The position numbers were made by a program, and so were the translations under genes. A stretch of DNA of 64,000 nt from Cercozoa sp. M6MM (lineage: Eukaryota; Protista; Endomyxa: Ascetosporea): assembly GCA_040357565.1 (NCBI GenBank), contig JBDODJ010000010.1; one strand, 5' to 3'. The notes beneath the pieces are model-generated. The model saw only the letters and a list, made by a program, of their open reading frames with translations. It did not search any database and was not told where the DNA came from. Positions 4,289 through 14,251 of this stretch are shown in pieces (position 1 is the stretch's first letter; each line of letters opens with the position of its first letter).

Positions 4289-5338
4289 ATGCGAGAGTCG
4301 TTTGGCAGCGCGCCGCTTCGCGGCACCCGCAAACAGGGCGACGGTATGGTCAAAGCGCTGGGGCGCCGCGTGCCGCAGCTGCGCTTCAAGCATTACACAG
4401 CATTCCAATACGTGGCGCCGCGTGCTGTTGATGCTTTAGCTGTACCCAGTTAATCTATTGTTTCTTTATTCCCATTTATTCTCTGGCCTCCAGGAGATGA
4501 AGAAGGACGGAAGTGCGCCTGTCATCGTGTTTCCGCAGTACGCGCACTTTTCGTGCACTACATCGAGCTCGTCACTAAACGAGCTCTTCTCGCTGTCTGA
4601 TATTCAGGGTACACTCTCGTAACCTGTGAAGCTGTCTCCCCTTAATCTCTTGCCTTGTTGTTCTTCGCAGACATGGACTGCTCCCTCATTGATCGCTGGC
4701 ACCTCCACGAGGTGTGTCATCCTCTTTGCTCTGCTGACCGATATTTATCCTATCTCTTTGACTTCTTTCCATCGCGTCGCCAGGTCTTTTTGACGGCAGC
4801 AGCCCAGCGTATCATTGACTCCTACGAGCACGAGCGTGATGAGGACCCTCTCGTACTGTTCTCGGCACACTTCGTGCCAATGCAGACCGTCTTGAAAGGT
4901 GTGTGTCTGTCTGTGTTTTGTCGCTTTACCTTCTTGCACCCTATACCTTAGCTCTCGTTATCATATCTTGTCTTCAGGTGACGCTACGTTGGTGAGATTG
5001 CCGCCTCTGTCAAAGGTGTCATGCACTTGTCAACAGCACCTGGTACACACTCCACGTTTGTCATACACATCCTACCAAATTACTCACGCTTTCCTCAGAA
5101 AAAACAAGGCAAGCCGCACTTGCGACATCTCTTGTCATGGCAGAGCAAGGTGAACACAGTGAGCCTTTTTGCTTCACTTCCTTTTTATTGTATGGTAGGT
5201 CGGCTTCATGCCGTGGATGGCGCCGTCCGCTGAGACAGTTATCGAACAGGTAATGAGCTCCACATACACAACACACACGCGCGTGCACACCTCGTGTACC
5301 TCCCGTGTTTAGCTGGGTGCACAAGGCTGTCAACTTTG
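4289..5338 (+). pseudogene. hemH: Ferrochelatase internal fragment, frameshifted and truncated at both ends
   Basis: GSAPLRGTRKQGDGMVKAL, FPQYAHFSCTTSSSSLNEL, SLIDRW, LFSAH, GD/YVGEIAASV (frameshift ~4983), LSWQSKVGFMPWMAP; stop after LGAQGCQL; no N-terminal GGP motif or C-terminal DHIETL motif seen. Confidence 0.75.
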
Positions 5339-5597
5339 AGTTGCAGTAACACGACACGACAGAACAAACCCGTTCGGTCATGAAATAGGACGTGCTGCCG
5401 TGCACAGCGCGGCCGATAGGCTATCTTACGGACGCATAAGTCAACCTCAATCGATTTACGTTTCTGTCACTTGAATGCTTCGGTTGGCAGTGACCGTACG
5501 TTCAGTTACTGGTCAGGTTACTCAGGTACTAGTTAACCCAGGTTGTCCCAACGCAAGATGTCCTGGCCTCCACTCTAAGCGGGGACGGTGAACTACG

Positions 5598-5651
5598 CTA
5601 CGGCCATGCGCTTGTGACCCACCCAGGACTGACTGGTACAGGGAAACTACA
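5598..5651 (-). repeat. Copy of a small dispersed repeat (also at 34126-34211 and at the Merlin insertion site)
   Basis: Reverse complement tgtagtttccctgtaccagtcagtcctgggtgggtcacaagcgcatggccgtag matches 34161-34211. Confidence 0.8.
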
Positions 5652-5807
5652 TACTGTAGTAGTTGAAAACTACCGTTCTTAGTCTCCTGACGCGAAGTGG
5701 CGACGTTTACCGTACATACCATACCGTGCGGTCGTCGCGTGGTGCTACGGTAGTAGCTAGTCAGGTATAACAAACGGAAATCAATGCAACCAGTGAAAGC
5801 GACGCGA

Positions 5808-5855
5808 GCCGGAGAAGCTGTGGGCCGGAGAAGCTGTGGGCCGGAGAAGCTGTGG
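5808..5855. repeat. 3 x 16-bp tandem repeat next to a stop codon
   Basis: gccggagaagctgtgg x3. Confidence 0.9.
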
Positions 5856-5859
5856 GAGC

Positions 5860-6600
5860 TTATTCTGGCTGCTGTTGCTGCTGCCGCTGTAGCCGTCGCT
5901 GTCGCACGCGTTTCACGGCCTCCTGCTGCACATGCTCGATTTCTTCAGGCGTCAACTTGCCGGCGCGCATAGCGTTCTCAGCTGCAAAAATTGGGTCCAC
6001 CGAAAGTAATACTGTTCAAGAAAAGCCAAATGTACCGTTTAGCAGCTGCAAGTTGTCCTCGGCAACGGAGATTTCGACATTCGCGTCGCCGCCGCGCGAG
6101 CCGTATCGGTCGTCCAGCACAATACGCCTGGGGGAGGGGTAATGAGGCACAGTGTAGAATTTTAATTCAAAGTACCAGTCGCGGCCAAATTCAAGTTCCA
6201 TTTGTCGCTCGCCCTCCCTGTACGTCACTTCGTATGGCTCACCGTGGAATACCTGAGCAAAACGATCCATCTGTGAAACCGCTGTCCAGAATGTTAAAAA
6301 CCTCACCAGGTAAAGCAGCAAAGGCGATCCCATGACGACATAGAGCCATCTACAGAAGTCCAGTAATTATGGCTAGCAGGGGGAGCAAATCATGGCACCC
6401 AGCGTGCAGGCGCAGCTTTGTTGACATTCGCGTGTAAGTGAGTCGCTTTTTTGCACCCAGCAATCTGTGTATGAATCAGAGGATACACCAGCCGGGTGCA
6501 AAATGGGGTAGTTACTGGGAATACCGGAGAACATTCTCCATAGAATTGTGGACCAAACGCGACATCTTGGATTGGCGGACTGAAAATCTCGCAAGCTAAA
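5860..6600 (-). CDS. Hypothetical single-pass membrane protein (5' end uncertain)
   Basis: Exons splice in frame: WLYVVMGSPLLLYL / MDRFAQVFHGEPYEV..RDW / RIVLDDRYG.. / AENAMRAGKLTPEEIE..QQPE*. Confidence 0.5.
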
Positions 6601-6876: not shown

Positions 6877-7049
6877 TTGAGCTGCCTCCACATCCAACGT
6901 GAGCTGGTGTCACATGTTCCATGTGGCTTCTGTATTTACTCACTAGCTGTGAATGCCCGACCAGCGTACGTAGCCGGACTATCCCTGTCGCTATTCCCGT
7001 CTACATAGACTGGACACCAATACACACGCACCGCAGCACGGCAAAAAAA

Positions 7050-10000
7050 CTAGTGGAATCCAATGTGTGAGAAGATACGTGGGTAAGCTGGCTCTGGTTG
7101 AAACACGGGCGCGGGTAGAGACGACTCGTGCAAGACTGCATGTGTCGATCCGATCACCTGTACACAATCCGCATTGACAGTAAAACCAAACACATATTGT
7201 GTGGTTGAATGTTGTGCCTCGTCGTGCAGCATGTCAAGTGCCTGCGAGTGCGAGTGCCGTCTCATCACCGCGTGCACTTCCAGCAGTCCCTGTGGCACAT
7301 GTGGTGGGGTTGCGGGTGGGGGGGGGGGTGGGGGCTAGCAGTTCGAACCTCGTAAACGATTAGGTTTGCGAGTAGAATTAGGACGCCCCACAAACACTCA
7401 AAGTACATGCTTGCTACAGTACCGCAATATGCAACGTTACAATGCAAATCAATTATTGCAGTGGTACACGCGACACCGACGCCAAAGAAAGTGCCAGCAA
7501 CAGCACAAGTCAACGCCATGTGCACTCGCACCATAACCGTTAGAAGCTGCGCGTACACGTAGGGCAAGTGCGAGGATGAATAAAGGAACACGTCGCCTGC
7601 AGCCGCTCCTGCAGACACGGGCATGTAAAGTGCAGTTACTGTATCAAAATCAAGGTACGTAGTGAGGAGATCTCTCGCTCGATCACAGAAATAGAGGACT
7701 GCCGCGTCACGATAAGTGACTGTTGGGCAGCCTCCGCCAACTGAGTCACCCACCTTTAAAGTAGACCGCAAAACACTGCAGCGACTGACCACAAGTATCG
7801 AAGCAGTACCAAGTTCGTCATCCACGAGTGTACAAGCGTTGGCATCGTTGTCGCTTCCACCTTACTCAGACGCGCTTGCTCGTCCACTGCACCAAACAAG
7901 ACGTGCAAACTTGCTTTCCCAGATCACAATTGAATGAAGGCAAACATACATCTAACCAGACCCTTGGTGCGCAGTTTGTCCAAGTGTGACACTTGTTTAC
8001 TTGCTTGTGTCTCCCCTGCGACAAGTCACTGTGTTTTCCATGCTTAAAAGTAGCAGCGGGTAACTTGTACCCAAAGAAGGCGATCGTGCGAGATCGAAAT
8101 GGAGTTCAGTACTATCGATTTCGACATCAGTCTCGGAATTGGCCTCGTCGCCATTAATGTGAAGATTCGACAAAGCCACAGATCTACAGTTTCGACAGGT
8201 GTGAGCCATTTCAGACAAGCATATATTATTTGCGTGAGAACATACTGCAGCAACGGTTGCTCACTTCCCTCGTATTCTTCGATCTCATCCTCGCTACATA
8301 ACATCACGCGCTTTATGCGGCACAATGACAGAAAGAAAAATTAAGCACTGTTTCTCGTCTTTTCTGTCATTTTTGGTCGGTAGCGACATGTGAACCAGCG
8401 CGAAGCTGCAAGAAAGATTATTCGCACAAAGGAACCATTGAGAAATATCTAACTTGGGGCAGCACCATAGATTGAGCAGACGAATGAACTCGCCGCGGAA
8501 ATATTTAGCTTTTGCTGAAGCTTCGCGTTCCTAAAAATGCACAAGTGTGCACAACACGTCAAAAAATCGAGACTCAATGAGGAAGCACCGTCGTCCGAGG
8601 TGCCACGAGAGCGCAGGCAGAAACAGCCACAGATACGGTTTTCTTCGCGAGACCTGAAGCATATACAGATCCGCCTAGATCCACATAAGTGTACTTATGT
8701 ACTGTTGAATGCGACTAGCACTTGCCACCTATACAACTACACGATAGTGGCACCTACGAACATTTTGGATACCAACGGTACCATCGATGAAACGTTTGCT
8801 GTACAAAGTTGCCCAACAGAAAGGCAAGCGCGCTGCCGAACAGAAACCCTCTACAAAACAGAGTTTACATGCAAGATGTGCACAAGAGAACAACGCAGAT
8901 AGAATGTCACCTGTCAACTGAGATTCGCGGAGCGCACAAGCCCGTGCATACTTTCACACTGTTGTGACAGTGCACGATAAATGAGACGATAAATGAGCCG
9001 ATCACAAAAACTGTCAAGCGTACTCATCGAGGTCTTGTTTGTCCGTACTGGCGACACAGTGTGTGTCACACAACAGACTACAGCAATCATACAACTTCCA
9101 CCGCGACACGTCAAAACATAAACGTAAACGTACACAGCATAGCCCGCAGTAAACAGCACGTAGATCAGGAAAAAGACGCCCAGTCGACGGCTGCTTAGTG
9201 CCGAGTAGGCTACCTGTAGGGCAAAGTAACATACGACACAACACACCGAGTTGCAACTAACGCACGTTGAAAGCAAAGCCAATTGAAAAGAGCGTGTCGG
9301 CGTCGTAATTGACGACACGATTTAAACCGTCCACCAGCAAGGCAGCTGCCAAGTTTCGTAAACATACAACACATACCACACAGACGCAAACAATTGCATA
9401 GTTTGTGCACCGTCATCCGAACTGGCGGCGAGTGTGCTTCGATACTGCGAGATCACTCTGCATCCTCCCATTAGATGCTTGTTTCAACAGATACACAAAA
9501 TTGAACAGCAGTGTACACATTAAGCGACTTCTTGATGCGCCACAGACGGTACACGCGCAAAAGCCGCAACACCCTGCACACAACAAGCAAACAAGGAGAT
9601 GAGACAGAGAGACGGAGAGTGACGGAGAGAGAGAGAGATGTGCAGAGAGAGAGAGTACATTAAGAGGAGCGGGACGGTTGAAAGCTCGGAAGACGAGGCA
9701 GACCACTCTCCATCGGATACAAAGTACACGAGCAACGCAATGTCCAAAATGGCCACGAATCCGTCGATGCAGAAACTGTAGCTGCGCAGTCGAGACGCTG
9801 CAAGTGGGTTTAAAAATGATTTGATAGAACTCATTGGGGGGACACGGGAGATACACAAACGGAGTCGGAGCAAGCGCACAAGGCGTATTACAACGTCCAA
9901 CACAAACACCGAACTTAGGACAAGATCCTGCAAAGGAAGTGAAAAGCAGCGAAAGTACTCGCAACGATGCTTTACCATCCAAAACAGCACGACCGGGCCA

Positions 10001-10439
10001 TGAATATTGCCGCTGAACTTCTCCTGCGGTTGCCCATCTTAAAACTCCTGAGTGTGGGCAAACAATTTTACCTTGTGTAGTGCGTAACCTGCGAGGCGTA
10101 GTGTCACTGTAAGGATAGAAAACAGCACAAGGCATGCGTGCAAAGCCGCAATGCGATAGCCTGCCGTCGCTTGTCGGAACCACAAAACTACAAATACGTA
10201 CAAACACAGCACGCATGATACATGAATAGGATAGAATACAATGGTATCGACGGCGGCGTAATTGTGCTTCATGTCTCGTCTGAGGAAACAAGATTAAATC
10301 TCTCCACGATATCGGCGTTTTCCGTGCGCGCTCGTACTACCTTAAAAGCGTCGCGTTTCACTTTTAATAAGCTCTGCCGCTTTCGTAAATCCTCTAACGT
10401 TCGCTGTCTGCTTGACACACGAATGTACAGGACACCGAG

Positions 10440-10496
<57 letters not shown>

Positions 10497-10614
10497 TATA
10501 CCTGCGAACGGCTTGCTGGCGCAACAACGCGTCTGCACAACAAAAACTCTTGACTTACCATCAGTCATACATTCAGTCGCAGTGGCAGTGTGAGGCACCA
10601 ATGTTCGGTTGCAT
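7050..10614 (-). CDS. Voltage-sensor domain (S1-S4) fused to a bestrophin channel domain, ~28 exons
   Basis: Hand-spliced single frame: S1 IAALHACLVLFSILTVTL, S2 DLVLSSVFVLDVVIRL, S3 FCIDGFVAILDIALLV, S4 VLRLLRVYRLWRIKK; then bestrophin motifs [68 protein letters not shown]...[22 protein letters not shown]. Confidence 0.82.
10444..10496. repeat. (GA)n microsatellite in an intron of the VSD-bestrophin gene
   Basis: Direct observation. Confidence 0.9.
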
Positions 10615-13348: not shown

Positions 13349-14012
13349 ACGGAATACTGTCGAAACACCACAAATTCAAGTCAAGTAGTGACCAGGCATT
13401 TACGTTTCTCGCTGCGCGCTGTTCTCGCCTGTCACGACACCGAATTGAAATGAACCGAACCGACTTCGACTGCACTGATTGATTGCTGGTTCTATTTAAC
13501 AACCAAGCGTCGGATGCCTAGTCATTAGGGTCGGAGATTATTACGCCCGGCAAGTGAGCTCACCGACTACTCGCTGGCGATCGTTTTAAGAGGGTCGCAC
13601 GAAGTCAACAGGGGGAGGGTGGCGATCTCCTGAGAAAGTGGCGCGCGCGACCGACACGGCAGACGAGCTCCCATCTCTAAACTCGCCTGACTTGGTCTTG
13701 AAGGCGTTCACCTTCGACGCTCAACGTCATCACGACAGTGCAGTGGACGGAGATGGGGTGCGCCTTGTCGTCGTCATATCCAGCGGCTTGAACCGCGCGT
13801 GCATGGAGAGGCGAGGGAAGAACTGCCAGACAAAGACTTGCCCACTGCCACGCGCATGCCATTCACGTTGTGCACGAGGTAACGTGAGCGAATTCGGCGG
13901 TTTGATGTGGTAATGCCACATGGGACGGGCCAGGCAAAACGCACAAAGTGCAAAACAAGAATGCGTGCGGGGCTCCCCGTGACCCTTAGCACTCCCGCAG
14001 TCAGACGCCAGT

Positions 14013-14094
<82 letters not shown>

Positions 14095-14194
14095 NNNNNN
14101 NNNNNNNNNNNNNNNNNNNNNNNNNNNNNNNNNNNNNNNNNNNNNNNNNNNNNNNNNNNNNNNNNNNNNNNNNNNNNNNNNNNNNNNNNNNNNN

Positions 14195-14248
<54 letters not shown>
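14013..14248. repeat. (CA)n microsatellite containing an assembly gap
   Basis: CA array flanking 100 N. Confidence 0.95.

Positions 14249-14251
<3 letters not shown>

Follow-up and report, generated by a model that had tools for sequence, protein, structure and literature searches.

Does a single protist gene join a voltage sensor to a bestrophin channel? The question is raised by a locus in the draft genome of Cercozoa sp. M6MM, within a stretch of 64,000 nucleotides (hereafter the window) of contig JBDODJ010000010.1 (assembly GCA_040357565.1). A preliminary description, made from the letters of this stretch, had read positions 7050 to 10614 as one gene of many small exons, with a voltage-sensor-like S1-S4 half followed by a bestrophin half, and had proposed a pentameric channel gated by membrane voltage. 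The source organism, now called Lemnamoeba sinaloensis, was isolated from fish gills; it is a marine amoeba of amphizoic habit and belongs to the Apofilosa (Rhizaria) (PMC11069148, PMC13746701). Our analysis confirms this observation as a whole and partly supports its interpretation. The minus strand of the window carries, at 6936-10614, the gene MHM6MM_000900 with 29 exons, whose 664-residue product has the hallmarks of a voltage sensor in its N-terminal half and a bestrophin in its C-terminal half. As an explanation of the whole, we lean towards a single fused protein, in which a voltage-sensor-like domain would gate a bestrophin, and give this explanation somewhat better than an even chance.

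A spliced gene with a bestrophin half

The gene model relies on an exact spliced mapping of the deposited protein onto the window. This protein (P0001) is GenBank entry MES1907864.1, "MAG: hypothetical protein MHM6MM_000900 [Cercozoa sp. M6MM]", and it is identical to the product obtained by removing 27 GT-AG introns and one GC-AG intron, each of 48-94 nucleotides (nt). Six-frame matches of the individual exons place the gene at C10:119748-123230 in the genome contigs (the window being C10:112810-176809), and it is single-copy in its own genome. The stop-free frame of small spliced exons noticed earlier was thus recovered, although it had been counted as about 28 exons joined by GT-AG introns: there are 29, and intron 27 (7158-7217, minus strand) is the sole GC-AG intron. 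Its donor lies at 7217 (gcacaa), and the sequence of P0001 permits no GT donor at this junction. The end of the gene also had to be moved. If the last intron (7079/7009) is left unspliced, the reading frame runs to the TAG at 7050, which is where the preliminary description had stopped, whereas the deposited model splices once more and ends at 6936. Exons 28-29 (6936-7157, minus strand) encode a C-terminal tail, residues 615-664, in which no domain is recognised.

From what is generally known of gene predictors, a model that includes a GC-AG intron suggests that transcript hints reached the public annotation at this locus. The M6MM genome was annotated with the train, predict and update steps of funannotate using RNA reads, with jaccard clipping against fused transcripts (PMC11069148, section 15).

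P0001 was retrieved, together with a second protein (P0002), by comparing one exon (window 7349-7606, minus strand) with 1.84 billion representative proteins, and all searches with a joined protein used the deposited P0001. P0002 is an environmental fragment of 140 residues, 46% identical to P0001 over the matched TM3-TM4 region of the bestrophin part (TM, transmembrane helix). A model of the gene was also built by hand from the reading frames, the GT and AG sites and the order of the bestrophin-like blocks. It has 22 exons on the minus strand, 660 stop-free codons and introns of 48-85 nt, and 19 of its 21 introns agree with the deposited model. Its exon 21, which was left unspliced, was abandoned for the deposited version; P0002 has no insertion at the position of intron 25, and this supports that intron. 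Its start at ATG 10272, with an extra helix, was likewise dropped in favour of the deposited 5' end. The stretch opened by this ATG (10188-10272, minus strand) is read in another frame and codes for a helix of high hydrophobicity (hydropathy 2.33), leading straight into S1; the deposited model splices out 10239-10188 and reads a basic helix, so that the two 5' ends are mutually exclusive. Six-frame searches of the genome for the protein families did not find the gene, because its exons are too short, and NCBIfam gave no match.

The bestrophin domain spans residues 239-614 with helices TM1-TM4 and is encoded by exons 12-27 (7218-9213, minus strand). P0001 matches the Pfam family PF01062 with 58.2 bits (cut-off 24.2, E 9.8e-16) in two stretches, the better of which places residues 451-595 on profile positions 147-290. 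The match is spread over 16 exons in the right order; when single exons were searched against Pfam, no piece gave a Bestrophin match. In a HMMER search of the PDB, P0001 matched 13 distinct sequences of solved bestrophins (best E 6e-4), and the TM2 signature as well as residues 454-566 align with them in order. In the ESM Atlas model, residues 220-630 align to a bacterial bestrophin cluster with a TM-score of 0.76 by target. On these sequence resemblances the C-terminal half is a bestrophin, as had been proposed from a comparison with human BEST1.

This bestrophin departs from the well-studied ones in its control regions. The neck positions I76, F80 and F84 of BEST1 correspond to S305, F309 and N313 in the HMMER alignment, the middle Phe alone being kept. 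No acidic cluster of the kind that forms the Ca2+ clasp was found after TM4 (residues ~599-614). The PF01062 match ends at profile position 290 of 324, and P0002 is also without the cluster. The domain further contains an acidic insertion loop at residues ~393-470. Compared with BEST1-4 and KpBest, with which it shares the signatures of the TM2/TM3 region and the order of the four TM helices, P0001 thus has a different neck, no acidic Ca2+-clasp cluster that we could find, an acidic insertion of ~75 residues and ~240 extra residues at its N-terminus.

The same genome has a conventional bestrophin paralogue (C136:18000-27000, at about 4551-6326 on the plus strand of that stretch) with few introns and a Ser/Arg-rich N-terminus, which keeps an intact acidic cluster after its last TM helix. 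Upstream of it we saw no voltage-sensor-like exons, and there is no S4-like motif nearby. A tblastn search of a paralogue's open frames against the region of the gene returned mostly noise. Concerning P0002, scans of metagenome contigs for the contig it comes from gave just one unrelated bacterial contig with a common short motif. This contig, Ga0316217_10083235, carries at 958-1404 a small bacterial open reading frame beside a diguanylate cyclase. This frame has in common with the C-terminal tail of P0002 a motif of eight residues and the sequence around it (38% over 50 residues), probably by chance.

The bestrophin match also bears on whether the locus makes such a protein at all. A single-copy orphan among 5.8 billion proteins, with 28 introns in a genome that averages 10 per mRNA, might be an annotation artefact or a decaying gene, and the AlphaFold2 (AF2) models computed from the single sequence and from a 9-row alignment are both poor over this half, with a predicted local distance difference test (pLDDT) score below 50 across most of it. 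However, random threading of exons would not give 58 bits on the Pfam Bestrophin profile over 16 exons in order. The composition of exons and introns differs as well (GC 0.52 vs 0.45, T 0.26 vs 0.35), and P0002 keeps the TM3-TM4 region at 46% identity with no insertion where intron 25 lies. We regard an artefact or a decaying gene as very improbable.

The voltage-sensor-like half

The N-terminal part of P0001 begins with a basic stretch, residues 1-52, encoded by exons 1-4 (10240-10614, minus strand). It had been described as helical, and the single-sequence AF2 model, whose overall pLDDT is 42.7, indeed predicts one long helix over residues 1-40 at pLDDT 80-91; the segment is presumably cytosolic. 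Exons 5-9 (9517-10187, minus strand) follow with residues 52-196, and these resemble the S1-S4 domain of voltage sensors in their helices, charges, alignment, weak profile matches and fold.

The hydropathy profile has four hydrophobic helices within residues 58-195. S2 contains D107-x6-F114-x2-D117-x3-R121, which corrects the spacing D-x7-F-x2-D given in the preliminary description. The Asp noticed in S3 is D142, and S3 also has D149. The S4 exon (exon 9; 9517-9573, minus strand) has exactly the boundaries given before and encodes four Arg at every third position (R180, R183, R186 and R189), then two Lys (K191 and K192). The S2-S3 loop (residues 121-135) has six Arg and the S3-S4 loop (159-168) has acids as its only charged residues, from which a canonical positive-inside topology can be read, with the N-terminus and the S2-S3 loop inside and the S3-S4 loop outside; K and R residues also follow S4. 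Across all six frames of the whole window (64 kb), the motif R-h-h-R-h-h-R-h-h-[RK] occurs at this locus only, as two overlapping matches in register, and no S4-type motif was found near three other bestrophin genes.

Comparisons with channels point in the same direction. In a MAFFT alignment, S1 to S4 are each in register with their counterparts in five voltage sensors from channels of the same genome, and the charge-transfer residues of S2 and S3 align with the F/E/K-R and D columns of these sensors. A profile of these five sensors scores 11.1 bits over S2-S4, a value that global and local shuffles each attained twice in 2000 trials. On S2 alone hhalign gives P 3.6e-4, and phmmer against the open frames of the channels gives an E of about 1e-3 on S3-S4. 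The Pfam family Ion_trans matches the S4 exon piece with 12.6 bits (cut-off 25, E 0.077, profile positions 87-119) and is the sole family reported for this piece at E <= 10. When the whole of P0001 was searched against the PDB at E <= 10, two voltage sensors were the only matches to the N-terminal half, namely TPTE2 (E 0.2) and Cav (E 4); unspliced exon pieces gave marginal or junk matches only.

Structure models are consistent with these results. For residues 40-215 the nearest feature clusters of the Atlas are labelled "ion transport" (0.83 and 0.81, which has the value of a lead), and the Atlas model of this segment resembles PKD (TM-score 0.65) and KCNH (0.61), all others being <= 0.50. 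With the 9-row alignment AF2 reached pLDDT 65-80 over residues 10-220, a gain confined to the N-terminal 220 residues. The resulting model is closest to the voltage sensor of Ci-VSP (4g7v; Z 10.0, root-mean-square deviation 4.2 Å, 127 of 136 residues aligned), followed by the sensors of Kv, Cav, Nav, TPC and CatSper, and Foldseek gives it a probability of 0.85 and an E of 0.95 against Ci-VSP, matches that should be read as partly circular. Taken together, these features and similarities make it very probable that the N-terminal domain is derived from a voltage sensor, even though the formal family threshold is missed.

What follows S4 is not a channel pore of the usual kind. As stated in the preliminary description, there is no S5-pore loop-S6 after S4 in P0001; a linker of 45 residues leads from S4 to the bestrophin domain. 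The true Ion_trans genes of the genome are located elsewhere. A four-repeat channel of the Cav/Nav type (C7:76380-81771) is encoded in long open frames (400-900 codons) interrupted by very few introns, against 28 introns here. Hv1 is, like the N-terminal half of P0001, an S1-S4 domain with no pore domain, but it is followed by a coiled coil and not by a channel domain. Hv1 also requires an Asp in S1 for proton selectivity, whereas residues 56-90 of P0001 hold no D or E and have R56, R63, R82 and K90 as their charged residues. An Hv1-type proton path is unlikely because S1 has no acidic residue.

One protein or two adjacent genes

The exon of S4 and the exon of bestrophin TM1 are 303 nt apart, and two short exons, 10 and 11 (9266-9457, minus strand), lie between them and encode the linker, residues 196-238, which contains no Met. 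The three introns that join these exons are exactly those of the preliminary description (9516-9458, 9410-9346 and 9265-9214), and they yield the linker peptide it had given. Introns 9, 10 and 11 measure 59, 65 and 52 nt; none of these is a multiple of three, so that none of the introns can be retained without a break of the frame. The topology is consistent across the junction, S4 ending and the bestrophin beginning in the cytosol. The boundary of intron 10 is the least certain of the three. Its acceptor (9346-9357, minus strand) is weak, at -0.9 bits, a score matched by 48% of the decoy AG sites.

Several observations weigh against a single voltage-sensing fusion, and we put them together here. 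When the region was shuffled, a stop-free path with GT-AG introns of 48-94 nt could still be traced in 8 of 10 cases, and the opposite strand allows one as well. An open spliced frame alone is for this reason no evidence, and the weight falls on the resemblances of the product. Beyond chance are the Pfam Bestrophin match, the confinement of the S4-type motif to this locus and the differing composition of exons and introns. Word-indexed searches of 5.8 billion proteins with the whole of P0001, with residues 50-215 and with a profile of P0001 and P0002 returned no full-length relative, the self-match excepted; the preliminary description had suggested looking for the same architecture in protist proteomes, and no relative with both halves came out of these searches. 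The sole relative is P0002, a 140-residue piece of the bestrophin part. Genes in this genome are closely packed, the median distance between them being 176.5 bp (PMC11069148, Table 1), and if intron 9 is retained a TAA is met after 15 codons. On the side of the sensor, a profile search of the spliced protein had been suggested for both domains. Bestrophin is found above its threshold, whereas Ion_trans (PF00520) is not reported for the whole of P0001 even at E <= 10. Each of the voltage-sensor similarities is weak on its own. The structural matches have scores that helical bundles commonly give, and those of AF2 are partly circular because the alignment behind the model already held voltage sensors.

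Some of these points would be explained if two adjacent genes had been misjoined. The first would encode a voltage-sensor-only protein of ~210 residues ending at the TAA in intron 9, and the second an ordinary bestrophin starting at the ATG (~9471) of a TAATG. In this arrangement the read-through of intron 9 halts after 15 codons at a stop that overlaps an ATG, and from this ATG, whose frame is that of exon 10, would come a plausible bestrophin N-terminus of ~50 residues ahead of TM1. The compactness of the genome, the ease with which stop-free paths are threaded by chance and the lack of an ortholog that would confirm the fusion fit it as well. Yet the critical junction, intron 9 (9458-9516, minus strand; gtacac..atgcag), looks like a genuine intron of this gene. 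It has a typical size (59 nt) and the commonest donor class of the gene (gtac, 10 of 28 introns). With scoring matrices derived from the remaining introns of the gene, its donor reaches 5.7 bits and its acceptor 6.7 bits, each as high in 4% of decoys and thus better than 96% of them, and it ranks 7 of 28. Two genes at this place would have zero intergenic distance, leaving no space for separate transcript ends. The intronic ATG would be the sole possible start of the second gene, since the next Met after M177 is M380, past bestrophin TM2. Finally, the annotation used RNA reads with jaccard clipping against fused transcripts (PMC11069148), and it reached the single-protein model of the preliminary description independently. 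We consider a misjoining of two genes unlikely. Judging from the splice sites, the absence of Met and the RNA-informed annotation, both halves are probably in one reading frame on one mRNA.

The TAATG itself (9469-9474, minus strand), with its TAA in frame with the S4 exon and its overlapping ATG in frame with exon 10, could have arisen by coincidence or could point to an alternative product made upon intron retention. Intron 2 contains a long (CT)n/(AG)n microsatellite at ~10440-10500, and (CA)n/(GT)n runs border a stretch of N at about 13,800-14,250 in the window. These repeats fit the published remark that simple repeats break the draft assembly of M6MM (PMC13746701).

Possible gating and related sensor-effector proteins

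If both halves are made as one chain, the product would be a 664-residue membrane protein with a basic cytosolic helix, a voltage-sensor-like S1-S4 domain, a linker of ~45 residues and a complete bestrophin domain. By homology with bestrophins it would be expected to form a pentamer, in which the five sensor domains lie at the periphery around a single central anion pore. The S4 arginines would move in the membrane field and act, through the linker, on the N-terminal segment of the bestrophin and on its neck. Membrane voltage would then replace Ca2+ as the opening signal, much as light does in the bestrhodopsins. We favour this route from S4 through the linker to the neck because the protein has no recognisable Ca2+ clasp and its neck is partly polar, two traits that fit a channel which ceded its control to another input. 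We would give voltage gating, together with pentamer formation and coupling, rather less than an even chance. A voltage-gated anion channel of new construction, with five S4-type sensors gating a pentameric bestrophin pore freed from Ca2+ control, is a proposal we hold a shade more tentatively still.

The fusion could also be real while the sensor does not gate the pore. The domain would then be a degenerate, sensor-derived anchor used in assembly, targeting or lipid sensing, or a domain acting independently, and the bestrophin would be gated otherwise or be constitutively open. The profile support for a canonical voltage sensor is under every family threshold, which leaves room for this. In TRP and PKD channels the corresponding domains are voltage-sensor-like but give no classical response to voltage, and such channels are among the best structural matches of the N-terminal half. 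The neck, with S305 and N313 in place of I76 and F84, may moreover belong to a weakly gated pore. However, voltage-sensor-like domains that do not sense usually lose the S4 Arg, the aromatic and acidic residues of S2 and the S3 acid, whereas P0001 keeps all of these, with four regularly spaced Arg in S4. As for a domain acting independently, the S1 with no acidic residue makes an Hv1-type proton path unlikely. A fusion with no voltage gating of the pore is in our view rather unlikely, though less so than the misjoining of two genes.

We know of several proteins in which one of the two ideas combined here is realised. The closest in design are the bestrhodopsins of marine algae. They are described as pentameric channels with sensor modules around the pore. 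Like P0001, they have a membrane sensor N-terminal to the bestrophin, its last helix ending in the cytosol. Their sensor, made of one or two rhodopsins of seven helices, responds to light, whereas P0001 has a four-helix S1-S4 domain, a presumed response to voltage and no rhodopsin. The geometry is the same in the two cases, since rhodopsins can precede a bestrophin by the same cytosol-to-cytosol passage that joins S4 to the bestrophin here.

The voltage-sensing phosphatases (Ci-VSP, TPTE/TPTE2) offer the parallel on the side of the sensor. Like P0001 they have S1-S4 with no pore domain, a short linker after S4 and an unrelated effector, and they are the best solved-structure matches to residues 57-198 (4g7v, Z 10.0; 9c49, E 0.2). 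Their effector is a monomeric cytosolic phosphatase of the PTEN type, in contrast to the multi-pass channel domain of P0001, which is expected to be pentameric. The sperm Na+/H+ exchanger SLC9C1 (structural match 8pcz, Z 8.1) provides a precedent for a voltage sensor on a transport protein that is not tetrameric. It differs in having its sensor C-terminal to a dimeric exchanger, where it works with a cyclic-nucleotide-binding domain, and in not being a channel.

Voltage dependence has also been found among bestrophins themselves. VCCN1 of plant thylakoids is not known to have the animal Ca2+ clasp or an S4-type sensor, and its response to voltage comes from the bestrophin fold itself. P0001 is a member of the bestrophin family like VCCN1 and adds a separate sensor domain bearing Arg residues. 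VCCN1 is a bestrophin-like voltage-dependent Cl- channel (PMC4890181, PMC9076864). In a full-text search of 8.4 million papers we found none on a voltage sensor fused to a bestrophin, in line with the preliminary description, which knew of none. The genome papers of M6MM and their supplements do not mention this gene, and the Atlas has no large nearby cluster carrying both families. The architecture is one of known ideas, a voltage sensor with an effector and a fusion of a sensor with a bestrophin, in a new combination.

The candidate fusion protein has thus been in GenBank already, unnoticed as a hypothetical protein. If the proposed gating holds, a canonical voltage sensor would for the first time be seen acting on a pore with an unrelated fold and five-fold symmetry. 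A pentameric anion pore would join the known effectors of voltage sensors, which are the tetrameric pore domain, the phosphatase, the exchanger and the sensor's own proton path, and the motion of S4 would prove usable by a quite different gate. For the bestrophin family, it would be a second natural design of a sensor-bestrophin next to the light-controlled bestrhodopsins, and it could offer a compact, genetically encoded, voltage-controlled conductance for chloride or bicarbonate, for study or engineering.

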